Below are positions 10,017 through 23,525 of a stretch of 64,000 bases of DNA, piece after piece. The stretch's first letter is position 1. The number at the start of each line of letters is the position of its first letter. The notes under the pieces were generated by a model, which was given only the letters and a program-made list of their open reading frames with translations, searched no databases and was not told where the DNA came from. Where the stretch lies: the NCBI RefSeq assembly GCF_006345805.1, contig NW_021832833.1, positions 36,138 through 100,137 on the forward strand. The letters run 5' to 3'. This DNA comes from Octopus sinensis (taxonomy: Eukaryota). The position numbers were made by a program, and so were the translations under genes.

Positions 10017-10127
10017 ATGTATTACAGTAACTTCCAGAGTAACCAGGTTTACATTTACAGGTGAAACTATGTCCTTTCCTGATACATGTACCGCCGTTCT
10101 TACATGGTTTCGTATGGCATGGATCGA
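10017..10127 (-). CDS. EGF exon 9
   Basis: 111 nt. [36 protein letters not shown]. Confidence 0.87.
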
Positions 10128-11221
10128 CTAGAGTATAAAAGAAATCGATGTTTTATTTCACAATCACATCTTTATTTACAACGGAATATAACAGAATTCG
10201 CATTTTGAATTTCCTGTCTAAACCTTTTACATATTTTCTCGATTTCTCTTTACTTTTTAAATCATTTTCTCCCGTATTCTTCCTGATTTGTAGCAAGAGA
10301 AATTAATTTTATCATCATCATCATCATCATCATCATCATCATTATCATCATCATCATCATCATCATCATCGCCAGATGCGTTAAATGATGTAGCCAGTCA
10401 TTGGGGTGCCACTAAAGAAACTTTTATTTTCAGCCATCGCCACTTCGTAGTAGGTTCGTTGTGATGTGGACTGTCCAGTCCTTAACGTTGTCAAACCAGG
10501 AATTTCTATGTCTGTGTGTGTGTATATAAGTCAGGACGCCATGATAGATCGTTAGCTCCTACACACATTTTTTCTCTCCTTTTTTTCTGTGTATCTTTCT
10601 GTCGAAGAGCGTAGGCTCGAAACGTAAAAGACTTTTTCTATTCCTGAGCGCTATACTAATACATTTGTTTGTTTGTACTCCACCTGCCTTCGTCTTTTGT
10701 TTACTTTCGAAAACTTTCCCTTTATATATATATATATATATATATATATATATATATATATAATATATATATAATATATATATATTATAATATATATATA
10801 TAATATATATATATAATATATATATATATATATATTATATATATATATATATATATATTATATATATAATATATATATATATATATATATAATATATATT
10901 ATATATATATAATATATATATATATATATTATATATATAATATATATATATATAATATATATATATATATAAAATAGAGATAAAACCACTATTATGCAAC
11001 TCAAACAGTAATAGACATAAACCAATACATAAATAACCAAGTGGTTTTATCTCTAATTCCTATTTTATATATTTATACTGTGAAATTTGATTTAATACTT
11101 AATTGAATTTTTCCCTGTAAATTTGGAGTTATACTCCCTAATATTATTATTAGTATTATATATATATATATATATAATATATATATATACATATTTGTAT
11201 ATATATATGTATACTTTTCTC

Positions 11222-11390
11222 GTCTAGGTTCAAGGAACGAAATTTTGAGGGAGTGGTTCTAGTCGATTACATCCACACCAGTACGCAACTGGTACTTAAT
11301 TTATTGACCTCGAAAGGTTGAAGACCAGAGTCAACCTCGGTGCAACGAAAAGACAGACGAAAATCCTCTTAGCATTTCGTTCGGCGTGCT
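11222..11390 (-). mobile_element. Degraded family-1 SINE
   Basis: caactggtacttaatttattgacctcgaaagg core. Confidence 0.65.
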
Positions 11391-11843
11391 AAGTTGTAGA
11401 TATATATATATATATAGTATGAAGAAAATGGAAAGTAAAAATCAATTTATTTACATAATAGCAGTCAATTTCATGTCTCCTATGCAGGTTTCAATTCCTA
11501 CCTTCATTCATATTTTCCAATTAAATTGAATTTAAAAGGTAAAAATCACATTGTCGTGCAGTTACTGTTTACATCTCGTTCAGATATTTATTATTGCTAT
11601 GAAATGAATAGATTTTACATAATTTTACAAGATTCATTTTCATCCTTTTCAGAAGCAGAAAATAACAGTATGATGCAAGGTCAACAAAATTAAAACCAGC
11701 AGCTCCCCTAATCCCAATGAATGTCCCAAGGGGATCTATAATTTTGAGGGCCGCCAAATTTGGTCCCCACTCACACCCTATTTTTACTGCCAGCTAAACT
11801 AAATACAAATTATTGGCGACCTAATCGGAGCAATAACAATGAA

Positions 11844-12161
11844 GGTACTACTTGAGAACCGTGGTCCCAGTGCGCGCACTCGCGTAGTCGCACATCCGCG
11901 CTAGCTAGTCGTGACTAGTCGATCCTACAACGACTACCTAGCAAAGTAAATAAAACACAAAATAAATAATTTTTTACACAAAGTAAATAATTTTTGTTAA
12001 ACAAAGTAAATAAAACACAAAAACACATGTTAAATAATTTTTTCAAACAAAGTAAATAACACAAAAAAACACAAAGTAAGGATCGACTAGTCACGACTAG
12101 CTAGCGCGGATGCGCGAGTACGCGAGTGCTCGCACCGGAACTACTGTTCTCAAGCAGTACC
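11844..12161. mobile_element. MULE (Mutator)-like MITE
   Basis: TIRs of about 90 bp (GGTACT...AGTACC) flanked by a 9-bp TSD AACAATGAA (11835-11843, 12162-12170). A-rich tandem interior. Confidence 0.88.
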
Positions 12162-12422
12162 AACAATGAATTTCATACCATGAACTCACAGTGAGTATCC
12201 TAAAGAGTTTCAATTTCTGAAGGGCCGCTTAAATAGGTCCCCACTGACACCCGCAACTTTTGTGGGTAGGGAGTTTGGAATGGAACCTCGAATAATTAAT
12301 ACCAGGAAAATACATACACAATGAACGTGTCCGAGACCACTACAGTACAGAAGTTATACGTCGCAAGGTTGGCTAGAAAGACGCCCGATTGGCAGCTTCA
12401 AGGCTGCTAATATTATACTTAC

Positions 12423-20122: not shown

Positions 20123-21065
20123 CTAGTGTATAAAATAAATATGAGCGTTATTCGACAGTGTTCTATATATTTATAAGGGTATAACGATAGAATATCCTTT
20201 AACGAAAGTTCTATTTACCGTTGTACTTATTGTTTATCTCTGTATATATTTATTTTCTTTGTCATCATCTCTCTGAGTTAGAAAAATTATTGTATTTGTT
20301 TTTTAAATAATAATTTGCTATAACATCGAAAGTTAAAGCATAAAATTTTATCCTAAATTATCTAACGAGAAACCAGCAAAAATCGGGATTTCGCAATTTT
20401 ACCAACATTGCTGGGACGTTTCCACAGCTATTGATACTCTTCCGTCGCTTTTAGCCCTATACAACTCTAGGAGGAGAAGCCTCCTCAAGAAGGAATTCTG
20501 CAGTTTTGCGGCTTATACATTATGCCCATGTTAAGGAATATATGCAGAATGCTATTATGAAGCCATACAACTCTCGTGGGTAATAACGATTATGCCTACA
20601 TATTTGTATGTGTGTATGATTATTTCTGTGTTTCGGTATGTGTGGGTGTGTGTGAGTGTGAGTGTGTATATGTATGTGTGCTCTGAAATTGTGCGTGCGA
20701 GCACGTATATGTGAGTGTATATATATATGCGTATATAGATAGAATGAAAGAAAGAAAGAAAGAATGAAAAATCGACAGACAGATTGCCAGACAGATAGAT
20801 AAATACAAAGGGAAACACACAAACGGACAGACAGACAGACAGATAGAGAGATAGAGAGATAGATGAATAGATAGATAGATAGATAGATAGATAGATAGAT
20901 AGATAGATAGATAGATAGATAGATAGATAGAGATAGATAGATAGATAGATAGATAGATAGATAGATAGATAGATAGATAGATAGATAGATAGATAGATAG
21001 ATAGATAGAAAGATAGATAGATAGATAGATAGATAGATAGATAGATAGATAGATAGATAGAGATA

Positions 21066-22136
21066 GACACCGCGAGTGTCAGGTTGCTCTCAAGCATTTC
21101 TGCCGTCCAGGACCAAATTTGTGCGACTTCTTTAGAACAAAGGCGTTTTATAGAGGATTAGTGGAGGGGAGGTGCGACGAAGTTCTCGGGCAGAATCTGG
21201 GCATCGACGAGAGACACCTGACCCGCCTGTCACGACAACTTTCGGGTCTGGACCTATGGACAATAACCTAAGATCCCTGGCCTGCTAGTGCTATCGAGAA
21301 GCATTACCTATTCAGGATAAGCTCTACAGGCACAGTTCGAGACACACTGGGCCTACTTGCCCGAGATGCGGCCGGAGCGACGAAACCGTTCTGCACGCCT
21401 TCGTGCAGTGTATATCCATGTCGGACCTGTGGGCTTATGCCGAGCGGCTGCTGTCATGTGTGGGACATGTCCGCCTGTCGGCCGAGTCTATTGTCTGGTT
21501 TGTACCGCTCCCTTCCCTCAACTAGGAAGACAAGGCAGTTTTCATCGTACTGGTGGCTATGGTGAAAGAATGTGTGTGGTGGACTCGAGCGAAAGGACAA
21601 GAGACAAACACTTATCTCTCTGGCCAATCGCTCATCAACATTTTCAAGTACCACTTCAAAAGGAATGTGAGAATGTGGAGGCAGGTTTTGTCGCGTGAAA
21701 GTTTCAAAAAGTTGGGTGAATGTAGCAAAGATGGTGCGCGCGAGTGACGAAACCACTTTGAGTATGATCCTTTAAATCATAGAGAGAGAGAGAGAGAGAG
21801 AGAGAGAGAGAGAGAGGAGAGAGAGAGAGAGAGAGAGTACATTGTACTCTTGCTTTTATTTCCCTCCCTGTCTGAAGTTACCGTGGTCTTTACTGTAAGC
21901 TTTTCTTTCCAATGATGAACCTAATATTGTTTGTTACTTTGAAAAAAACGATAAAAAGTTTTATTCTTTCTGTGAAACACGATCCCTTTTGATCCCTTTT
22001 TTTCCCGATCCATATTGATGGAAATTTAATATTTGTTTCCTTTTTTTTTCTTTTTCCTTTTCCATCTCCGAAAAGAAAAGCTCTACATTTGTATCGTCCC
22101 CTCCGTGTCCACCCCTGTGTGGCAATAATAAAAGTT
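21066..22136 (+). mobile_element. Inverted copy of the same Tx1 insertion
   Basis: Reverse complement of about 17484-18575, followed by (TATC)n. Confidence 0.85.
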
Positions 22137-22600
22137 ATCTATCTATCTATCTATCTATCTATCTATCTATCTATCTATCTATCTATCTATCTATCTATCT
22201 ATCTATCTATCTATCTATCTCTATCTATCTATCTATCTCTATCTATCTATCTATCTATCTATCTATCTATCTATCTATCTGTCTGTCTGTCTGTCTGTCT
22301 GTCTCTCCGTTTGTGTGTTTCCCTTTGTACTTTTCGATGCTATAGCAAATTATTAGGATTTTCTCAATTGCGACGGTTAATCTTCAGTTTTTCTTCCCTA
22401 CACCCTTCAAATGATGATTTGGGGAAATTTTTGGAAGAATAGTTTTGAAAATTTATTAATCTTGTGAAAACTAAGCAGGGTACATTCATACACCTTGCTT
22501 TTCATTAAAGCAAATTCCTTTCTATGAATGTATAACATTCCAAGCTCCTTTAATATATTGCTAAAAAGACATTTAGGATTATTTTTAGTGTTATACTTAC

Positions 22601-22711
22601 ACGAACGACGGTATCGTCCAATATAACCACGTCGGCATTTACAGGTGAATCTACGTCCTTTCCTGATACTTATGCCGCCGTTCTTACAAGGTTTCTTATA
22701 GCATGGATTCA
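22601..22711 (-). CDS. EGF exon 2 (type B, lacks Cys3 and Cys6)
   Basis: 111 nt with intact splice sites. NPCYKKPCKNGGISIRKGRRFTCKCRRGYIGRYRRS, only 4 Cys. Confidence 0.7.
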
Positions 22712-23414
22712 CTTGTATATAAAAGAATTAAAATTAGAATTTCACAATCTTGTGTATAATTACAATGAAATAATGGAGAAATTCAATTTTACAAATTTCC
22801 TGTCTAGTGCTTTTAATTACTTTCTTTAAATAAAAAATATGAGCTTCGGGTTTCAAAACAATTTGTAAATTTTCAAAATCTTTTTCATAAGCAAAAGCGT
22901 CTCTCTTTGTTTTTAAGAGCGTACTGCAAACAGAAAATTGGCCAAAAAAAAATCTGTCCTGAGGCTGGGAGCCGAGATTCATAAATTTTCAAACATTTTC
23001 TTCCAATAAAAATTTCCCCAAATCATCATTTGAAAGGGTGTAAGAATGAAAAACTGAAGATTAACCATCGCAATTAAGAAAATCCAACCTGTTTCGGTGT
23101 ACTATGCGGAAAGTCCGCCAAGTCACCCAATTGCGATAATTACACGGCAACTACGGGAGATTCAGTTAATGCGAGTATGTGTATATATACGTGTATATTA
23201 GAGAGAGGGGCGACAGAGGGATGGGGATTCATTACGTGGAATAACAGGCGAAGTTTCTCCCAATATATTTTCATTAAACAAGCCATTCAACCATGCACAT
23301 TTCTTAATATGTATTCATGAGGAACCTACCTTGGCTCTTTAAATATACTTGTAAAACAAAATCTATGATAAATCTATGCCTATAAATTATGGCTATTTCT
23401 TATGTTATACTTAC

Positions 23415-23525
23415 ATATATTACAGTATCTTCCAGAGTAACCAGGTCTGCATATACAGGTGAATCTATGTCCTTTCTTGATACATGTGCCGCCATTCTTA
23501 CAAGGTCTCCAATGGCATGGATTGA
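23415..23525 (-). CDS. EGF exon 1 (type A)
   Basis: 111 nt, phase 1-1, cactag|...|gtaagt. [36 protein letters not shown], 6 Cys. Confidence 0.88.

Follow-up and report, generated by a model that had tools for sequence, protein, structure and literature searches.

What sort of protein would string together EGF modules in which lysine and arginine abound and acidic residues are almost absent? This question is raised by a 64,000-nucleotide stretch of the Octopus sinensis genome (NCBI RefSeq assembly GCF_006345805.1, contig NW_021832833.1, positions 36,138 to 100,137 of the forward strand; hereafter the window), the minus strand of which carries nine EGF exons across positions 10017-23525, located by a six-frame scan and by inspection of the flanks. 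A first-pass annotation, made from the letters alone, had described a polycationic EGF array in this interval, had likened it to underwater-adhesive proteins and had proposed a cephalopod gene for a cement or egg-string protein. The gene is indeed a cephalopod one, O. sinensis LOC115229549, and the polycationic array is unusual as well as real. The reading that we favor, at about even chances and from the predicted domains, is that the product is a secreted, disulfide-multimerizing cross-linker with a polycationic EGF rod that binds polyanionic glycans. It is probably a matrix or mucus protein; that it is specifically a glue is less likely.

The nine exons, when spliced, encode 334 residues, of which 86 are lysine or arginine (53 R and 33 K), one is aspartate and none is glutamate, exactly the 86 basic residues against a single acidic one counted in the first-pass annotation. 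The same product contains 53 cysteines, 43 glycines and 20 tyrosines. Each repeat possesses 6 to 13 Lys/Arg residues, again as previously stated, and the net charge of a module is about +6 to +13. The isoelectric point (pI) and net charge, which the annotation had recommended computing, are 10.2 (with free-cysteine pKa values) and about +85 at pH 7; with disulfides formed the pI would exceed 10.2. The exons measure 111 nt, save for one of 114 nt; all are of phase 1-1, and each is preceded by a polypyrimidine tract and AG acceptor and followed by a GTAAGT donor. There are two kinds of repeat, A, with the consensus NPCHRRPCKNGGxCIRKGxxFTCKCRPGYSGRYCNI, and B, with the consensus NPCYKKPCKNGGACIRRGRRFICKCRRGYIGRYCRS, which follow one another in the transcript in the order A, B', A, B, A, B, A, A', A. 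One A and one B exon score 33.9 and 31.3 bits against Pfam EGF (PF00008, cut-off 21.5), Pfam hEGF (PF12661) is likewise above its cut-off for repeats of the array, and the six-cysteine EGF pattern is complete in seven of the nine exons. The further claim that calcium-binding EGFs are lacking holds as well: the consensus D/N-x-D/N-E/Q-C is absent from all nine repeats, which start F/L-N/D-P-C, and EGF_CA is not among the Pfam matches for the exon open reading frames (ORFs) or the whole protein.

The tyrosine of GY.G is the canonical aromatic residue of the EGF scaffold. The recurrent GYxGRY motif that had been pointed out is present in the repeats, while the idea that went with it, of tyrosine converted to 3,4-dihydroxyphenylalanine (DOPA), loses ground, since the first tyrosine of the motif occupies the canonical position, tyrosines lie mostly at canonical scaffold positions in general, and they make up 6% of the product. 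The O-fucosylation consensus of Notch EGFs is C2-X4-S/T-C3. Three A exons (A1, A2 and A5 in the table below) read C2-K-N-G-G-T-C3 and match it, and the other exons of the array have A, L, F or I in place of the threonine. A polyprotein or peptide precursor was also considered and is ruled out by the module borders, which have neither spacers nor dibasic sites; the linkers read CNI-FNPC and CRS-FNPC. Finally, a second frame on the same strand is open through every EGF exon (e.g. 23400-23525, 13634-13759 and 16437-16562) and would encode an acidic peptide (...HAIGDHVR..VSGKDVVSPVNADLVTLEDTV...). It was rejected as coding, because it is the EGF frame that links the WSC and VWA exons and shows constraint on cysteines and stops. 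Isoform X2 of a paralog in RefSeq, LOC115209189, opens with six repeats of such an acidic peptide (MHLIHAIADLARTVAYVLEEDGASAVNADLDIADDTV), and this resemblance suggests that the X2 model probably reads six more cationic EGF exons out of frame.

LOC115229549 is already annotated, though uncharacterized. Its RefSeq product, XP_036355134.1 (A0A7E6EIP6), is an "uncharacterized protein" of 965 residues that maps exactly onto exons of the window and uses seven of the nine EGF exons, skipping A2 and B3. The order of domains is a signal peptide, a probable WSC domain, the EGF array, a VWA domain, a contiguous VWD-C8-TIL assembly (hereafter the D assembly) and a C-terminal EGF-like module; the 62 residues of this last module fall beyond the start of the window. 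The prediction of a secreted multidomain protein with VWD-C8-TIL is thus borne out, with the signal peptide mapped and Pfam VWD, C8 and TIL in order. The closest relatives of the VWA domain in the PDB are collagen VI alpha3 and PTMP1, a thread-matrix protein of mussels. Those of the D assembly are FCGBP, with E=8e-230 summed over repeats, and VWF, MUC5AC and MUC2, at 1e-45 to 1e-59, the matches spanning residues 560-950. GDPH is the acid-labile autocleavage motif of FCGBP and the mucins; the first VWD exon reads GDLH in O. sinensis versus GDPH in Octopus bimaculoides (ortholog locus 18543-18800). Neither a proline/threonine/serine-rich mucin region nor a CTCK domain is evident in the 965-residue sequence. 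Judged by these domains, the product looks like a hybrid of a matrilin and FCGBP.

Table. Coding features of LOC115229549 in the window, in transcript order.
Feature	Position	Strand	Remarks
Exon 1, coding part	33462..33500	-	Start Met and first half of signal peptide (residues 1-13); exact mapping
Exon 2	33304..33348	-	Remaining signal peptide and predicted cleavage region (residues 14-28); hydrophobic core inferred by eye
Probable WSC, N-terminal half	28344..28469	-	Pfam WSC positions 1-45, 13.8 bits, E=0.067
Probable WSC, C-terminal half	25107..25229	-	Pfam WSC positions 45-82, 14.2 bits, E=0.053
EGF exon A1	23415..23525	-	7 K/R, 6 Cys; included in RefSeq model
EGF exon Bx (B')	22601..22711	-	13 K/R; C3->S, C6->R; included in RefSeq model
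EGF exon A2	20012..20122	-	9 K/R, 7 Cys; splice sites intact, skipped in XP_036355134.1
EGF exon B2	19205..19315	-	12 K/R; included in RefSeq model
EGF exon A3	16452..16562	-	9 K/R; included in RefSeq model
EGF exon B3	15654..15764	-	12 K/R; intact, yet skipped in RefSeq model
EGF exon A4	13649..13759	-	9 K/R; included in RefSeq model
EGF exon Ax (A')	12423..12536	-	114 nt, 9 K/R; C2 lost, additional Cys beside C6
EGF exon A5	10017..10127	-	6 K/R; holds the sole Asp of the array; final EGF exon before VWA
VWA exon	8177..8746	-	Pfam VWA E=5e-43; D-x-S-x-S MIDAS (metal-ion-dependent adhesion site) motif intact (DDSGS)
VWD, first exon	6192..6440	-	Pfam VWD; GDLH instead of GDPH
VWD, second exon	4453..4761	-	Pfam VWD; mapping
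C8 exon	1530..1796	-	Pfam C8 E=1.8e-12; mapping
TIL exon	397..588	-	Pfam TIL E=6e-7; mapping

How unusual is such an array? The nine exon translations were combined into a profile, with which 1.84 billion representative proteins were searched; very EGF-rich proteins dominated the ranking, and the matches were re-ranked by identity and charge. The closest relatives in this search were octopod proteins. Among 5,049 EGF modules from about 285 other multi-EGF proteins retrieved by the profile, only 0.6% have a net charge of +6 or more, which upholds the claim that the cationic EGF arm is out of the ordinary. A single non-octopus protein among those retrieved has an array of strongly cationic EGFs, XP_046863735.1 of the soft coral Xenia sp. 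("Notch-like isoform X8"), with seven modules of +7 to +9 that bear the motif YNACHTKPCINGGVCQRKGKLYNCKC. It differs from the octopus protein in that its array is flanked by unrelated Cys/Trp-rich repeats (CVNANWWKSFDKKGW...), is accompanied by neither VWA nor VWD, and favors lysine over arginine, and the two arrays are presumably convergent.

The octopod relatives include several paralogs, all of which are uncharacterized. XP_014776970.1 of O. bimaculoides has five cationic EGFs, and a longer model of 1545 residues has 17; LOC115209189 of O. sinensis (C3:23.67 Mb) also has a cationic EGF array, and the relatives in Argonauta have EGFs that are moderately basic. The Octopus paralogs resemble LOC115229549 in possessing cationic, non-calcium-binding EGFs, then VWA, then VWD-C8-TIL, and they share its exon structure (ctag|...|gtaagt, 111 nt). 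They differ from it in that their VWA domains are just 46-50% identical to its own and in that a second, near-neutral EGF block lies between VWA and VWD. Some have C-terminal PAN/Apple-like parts, and WSC was not seen in them.

Comparison with a second species sheds light on whether the exons are used. The O. bimaculoides ortholog, XP_052822701.1 ("cartilage matrix protein-like, partial"), was reached via the VWA exon. One quarter of its locus consists of gaps and its EGF exon count is a lower bound: there are at least 10 cationic EGF exons (A, several B, Ax and A5), followed by VWA, VWD and C8. The splice structure of the EGF exons is identical in both species. The Ax exon of O. bimaculoides keeps the 114-nt length, the loss of C2 and the CC doublet, and a B exon without C6 is found in both species, so that these odd-cysteine variants must be old and are not the outcome of recent decay. 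In one B exon of O. bimaculoides the donor is mutated (GT->TT). Pooled from the two species, 18 EGF exons encode 182 Lys/Arg and 3 Asp/Glu in 648 residues. Tests of constraint were based on the unique substitutions among the EGF exons of both species, compared with a neutral expectation. Nonsynonymous and synonymous changes were observed in the ratio 61:32, against 3.1:1 under neutrality. There were 4 losses of cysteine where 11.2 were expected (P=0.008) and no stop codons where 3.9 were expected (P=0.017). Between species the EGF exons contain zero indels, whereas the flanking introns contain many. The depletion of cysteine losses and stops, together with the absence of exon indels, therefore shows that the exons are translated and are constrained as EGF scaffolds. 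The VWA exon has a proportion of synonymous differences (pS) of 0.088 and of nonsynonymous differences (pN) of 0.056 between the two species, a pN/pS of about 0.64, and evolution is fast across the whole gene. Divergence in the EGF region is two to three times higher, also at silent and intronic positions, and this elevation fits turnover of the array or gene conversion better than simple orthology.

The history of the array can be read in the DNA around the exons. They lie in a tandem unit of about 3.5 kb with two kinds of cassette, A and B, the copies of which share 88-92% identity across stretches of 1.2-2 kb that include the introns. Because the repeats are tandem duplicates of these two cassettes, their charge is mostly inherited and does not amount to nine independent observations, and most of the extreme total charge of the array goes back to the recent multiplication of two cassettes that were basic beforehand. 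The units carry microsatellites and fragments of long interspersed nuclear elements (LINEs) with a zf-RVT C-terminus, which lie in EGF-array introns at 17304-18576 and 21068-22318. There is an inverted pair among these LINE fragments, 87.6% identical across 1.27 kb, and related copies are found near 57 kb (57032-57850). A tract of the type TCTATCTATC is common to every unit of the array and recurs at one site at 56 kb; long microsatellite or minisatellite tracts lie at 14400-14800, 17150-17500, 20700-21070, 30500-32000 (plus strand) and 56350-56690, and a (GTATGTATGC)-like run near 31 kb shows a strong GC skew.

Exchange between paralogs is apparent as well. An EGF cassette of LOC115209189 is 87% identical in DNA to the A5 unit of the window over 574 nt, introns included (C3:23671001-23681000, local positions 6502-7063, versus window 9875-10444), and since the VWA domains of the two genes are only 46% identical in protein, this match implies transfer of an exon cassette, or gene conversion, between the paralogs. 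The gene itself is present in three identical copies on unplaced scaffolds, two of them on C8755 (20-42 kb and 96-115 kb), and copies of the C8 exon, 96-100% identical, occur at four places in C3:23.72-23.83 Mb. These repeated copies represent either haplotig redundancy or very recent duplication. The RefSeq model XP_036354931.1 ("mua-3-like", 1111 residues) joins EGF exons of two gene copies and includes the A2 exon, and the product of LOC115229549 shares its 90% cluster with a 284-residue "zonadhesin-like" model on C3.

Three further observations concern the sequence between the exons and the remainder of the window. The 3' end of the VWA exon is duplicated in the next intron at 5681-5965 (minus strand), where it is 84% identical in protein to residues 175-236 of the VWA ORF; this fragment, probably a pseudo-exon, is present also in the C8755 gene copies. 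The intron between VWD and C8 contains an uninterrupted mariner-type transposase ORF of 331 residues (3087-4079, minus strand; Pfam Transposase_1, E=3e-22). An interspersed repeat with the pseudo-ORF ...IYRPRKDERQSRPRRNLNSERN.RRNT... occurs on both strands, at 24655-25041 (minus), 7951-8187 (plus) and 63682-63998 (minus), and is probably a SINE-like (short interspersed nuclear) element.

How might a protein of this architecture work? Following the precedents of VWF, FCGBP and the gel-forming mucins, the D assembly would drive formation of disulfide-linked multimers, and VWA may engage a matrix partner via its metal site. The disulfide-stiffened EGFs would constitute a polycationic rod that grips polyanionic glycans electrostatically, with sulfated mucins, chondroitin-sulfate-type glycosaminoglycans and egg-coat or jelly glycans as candidate partners. 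Polyanion binding by the cationic arm is a reasonable physical inference. Given multimerization, a VWA domain and a cationic rod, such a protein would be expected to cross-link or condense a polyanionic gel, and because the EGF exons are of phase 1-1 and lie in an unstable tandem array, the length and charge of the rod could change in frame, by exon skipping or by turnover of copy number. Skin or sucker mucus, egg cement, and connective tissue or cartilage are candidate settings. Support for a polyanion-binding cross-linker comes from the conservation of the exons in two Octopus species with constraint on frame and cysteines, from the paralogs, which also carry cationic EGF arrays that are rare elsewhere, and from the flatworm adhesion protein Mlig-ap1, a precedent for a cationic arm combined with a D assembly and acting on polyanions (PMC6410801).

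Several results weigh against this interpretation. Although 3 gains of acidic residues were observed among the EGF exons of the two species versus 4.7 expected, this difference lacks significance in a test of low power, so that selection for charge is not demonstrable. The EGF exons are no better conserved than their surroundings: divergence within the array amounts to 2-13% in exons and 5-10% in introns, and between the species the exons are 82-84% and the introns 75-87% identical. Two of the nine modules, Bx and Ax, are without canonical disulfide partners. The Cys-rich N-terminal domain is at threshold only as a WSC, a carbohydrate-binding domain, and we call it a probable one; its two halves match PF01822 in the correct order with a sum of about 28 bits (gathering cut-off 27.8), WSC is not reported by Pfam on the whole protein, and PDB sequence searches with both exon halves gave no match. 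The region is recently duplicated and poorly assembled, which leaves the true number of copies and the exons in use uncertain. Lastly, a literature search on LOC115229549 returned nothing, expression and proteome data included, and papers on octopus skin mucus, the argonaut egg case and the O. maya oviducal gland contain nothing assignable to this gene.

Closest in spirit to the first-pass annotation is the possibility that the protein is a specific underwater adhesive or cement, from the egg stalk (via the oviducal gland), the sucker or the skin, which primes surfaces and coacervates in the manner of Mfp-2 and Pvfp-5β, possibly with DOPA. We regard this as unlikely. The mussel proteins Mfp-2/Mgfp-2 and Pvfp-5β (PDB 7QAB) do share with the octopus array basic tandem or paired EGFs with surface Lys/Arg and Tyr, and Pvfp-5β, which coacervates, has a positively charged face of mixed Tyr and Lys (PMC9314366). 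A single octopus repeat detects Pvfp-5β with 29.5 bits (E=6.5e-6). However, the highest-scoring single modules of Notch2 and DLL1 reach 29.9 and 28.3 bits on the same scale, and since the Pvfp-5β score falls in this range the likeness to mussel foot proteins is that of EGFs in general, reflecting composition and not kinship. The octopus protein is moreover rich in arginine, each of its modules is far more highly charged, and its array is flanked by WSC-like, VWA, VWD, C8 and TIL domains that the mussel foot proteins lack. A specific kinship with Mfp-2 is not supported. The tyrosine content of only 6%, mostly at scaffold positions, and the fact that LOC115229549 goes unmentioned in the octopus mucus, egg-case and oviducal-gland literature searched, also speak against an adhesive.

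Other adhesives offer parallels as well. The VWA domain resembles that of byssal PTMP1, and "matrilin-like" proteins with VWA and EGF domains are glue components enriched in slug adhesive mucus (PMC11178922). Mlig-ap1 and Sfp1 of the sea star, cohesive proteins that serve temporary adhesion, are, like the octopus protein with its probable WSC, large, secreted and Cys-rich, with a lectin-type domain, VWD-C8-TIL and EGFs, and the extremely cationic region of Mlig-ap1 acts by binding polyanions, heparin blocking attachment (PMC6410801). The octopus array would yield only very short peptides with trypsin, a difficulty also noted for Mlig-ap1 (PMC6410801). The first-pass annotation was right to draw an architectural parallel with both proteins, which takes in a lectin-like domain, a strongly cationic region, EGFs and a D assembly. 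The likeness established is one of shared domains, with the octopus WSC at threshold, and the charge of Mlig-ap1 sits in low-complexity K/R repeats beside calcium-binding EGFs, whereas in the octopus protein it sits in folded EGFs that do not bind calcium. We treat Mlig-ap1 and Sfp1 as a fair functional analogy.

A matrilin-type adaptor of connective tissue or cartilage, in which VWA would bind collagen and the cationic rod the highly sulfated chondroitin sulfate of cartilage or dermis, is improbable to much the same degree. Cephalopod cartilage is rich in oversulfated chondroitin sulfate, the octopus VWA is closest to VWAs of the collagen VI type, and in matrilins (cartilage matrix protein) as in the octopus protein VWA adjoins EGF modules. 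In NCBI the O. bimaculoides ortholog carries the name "cartilage matrix protein-like", and "matrilin-2" is that of a close relative in O. sinensis, but these names are automatic. Unlike matrilins, the octopus protein has neither a second VWA nor a C-terminal coiled coil, the place of which is taken by VWD-C8-TIL and an EGF-like module, and its oligomerization would go via VWD-C8-TIL. The EGFs of matrilins are not known to be polycationic. FCGBP, zonadhesin, VWF and the gel-forming mucins share the contiguous VWD-C8-TIL, with strong sequence matches; the octopus protein differs from FCGBP and the mucins in having one D assembly only and, as noted above, GDLH instead of GDPH. Fast evolution, as measured for VWA, together with turnover of copy number would also be unusual for a core matrix protein.

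The charge might instead be a by-product of an unstable tandem repeat, in which a few ancestral basic EGFs were recently amplified, selection on the additional copies is weak or absent, this copy of the gene may be redundant or decaying, and the total charge has no special function. The near identity of the units with their introns, LINE fragments and microsatellites is in keeping with this, as are the roughly equal divergence of exons and introns, the two modules that have lost cysteines, the mutated donor in O. bimaculoides, the non-significant charge test and the multiple identical copies in the assembly. It is at odds with the depletion of cysteine losses and stops, with the zero exon indels, with the persistence of both odd-cysteine variants and of long arrays in two species, and with the independent retention of 5-17 cationic EGFs by paralogs. 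On this evidence, neutral amplification seems a rather poor explanation.

That the EGFs bind anionic microbial surfaces, making the protein a cationic antimicrobial or microbe-agglutinating component of mucus, is very doubtful: high positive charge, secretion, an FCGBP-like D assembly and fast evolution would all suit such a function, but rigid, disulfide-rich EGFs are not amphipathic peptides, and the inter-module linkers contain no processing sites. A Notch-type receptor or ligand, suggested by the Notch-type names ("neurogenic locus notch homolog") that NCBI gives to paralogs and by the best PDB scores of the EGF modules, which are against Notch and DLL1, is effectively refuted, as whole-protein Pfam matches comprise EGF-type families, VWA and VWD only (C8 and TIL being found on exon ORFs), with LNR, NOD, ANK, DSL and MNNL absent, and inspection of the sequence by eye reveals no transmembrane stretch.

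As a whole, these results are best explained, at about even chances, by a secreted, multimerizing cross-linker with a glycan-binding rod, and the polycationic EGF rod is a new variation on the secreted VWA/VWD/EGF matrix proteins. The locus is a clear example of phase 1-1 exon cassettes that multiply, pass between paralogs and are gained or lost between two Octopus species. We tentatively suggest, as a broader and rather speculative proposal, that folded EGFs have been turned into a modular "charged rod", the length of which is set by the number of in-frame exon copies and perhaps by splicing; that octopods, and by convergence a soft coral, came to use this rod as a novel glycan-condensing or coacervating element and a structured alternative to the disordered K/R regions of known bioadhesives; and that it spreads between neighboring paralogs as an exon cassette. 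Should the rod prove to bind or condense polyanionic glycans, it would represent a polycation that is structured, resists proteases and is built from modules. Current models of wet adhesion and mucus cross-linking are dominated by disordered Lys/Arg regions and by DOPA chemistry, from both of which such a rod would differ, and recombinant biomaterials could naturally be modeled on it. In that case it would also give a first point of molecular access to the mucus, egg cement or matrix of cephalopods, the proteins of which are almost uncharacterized.

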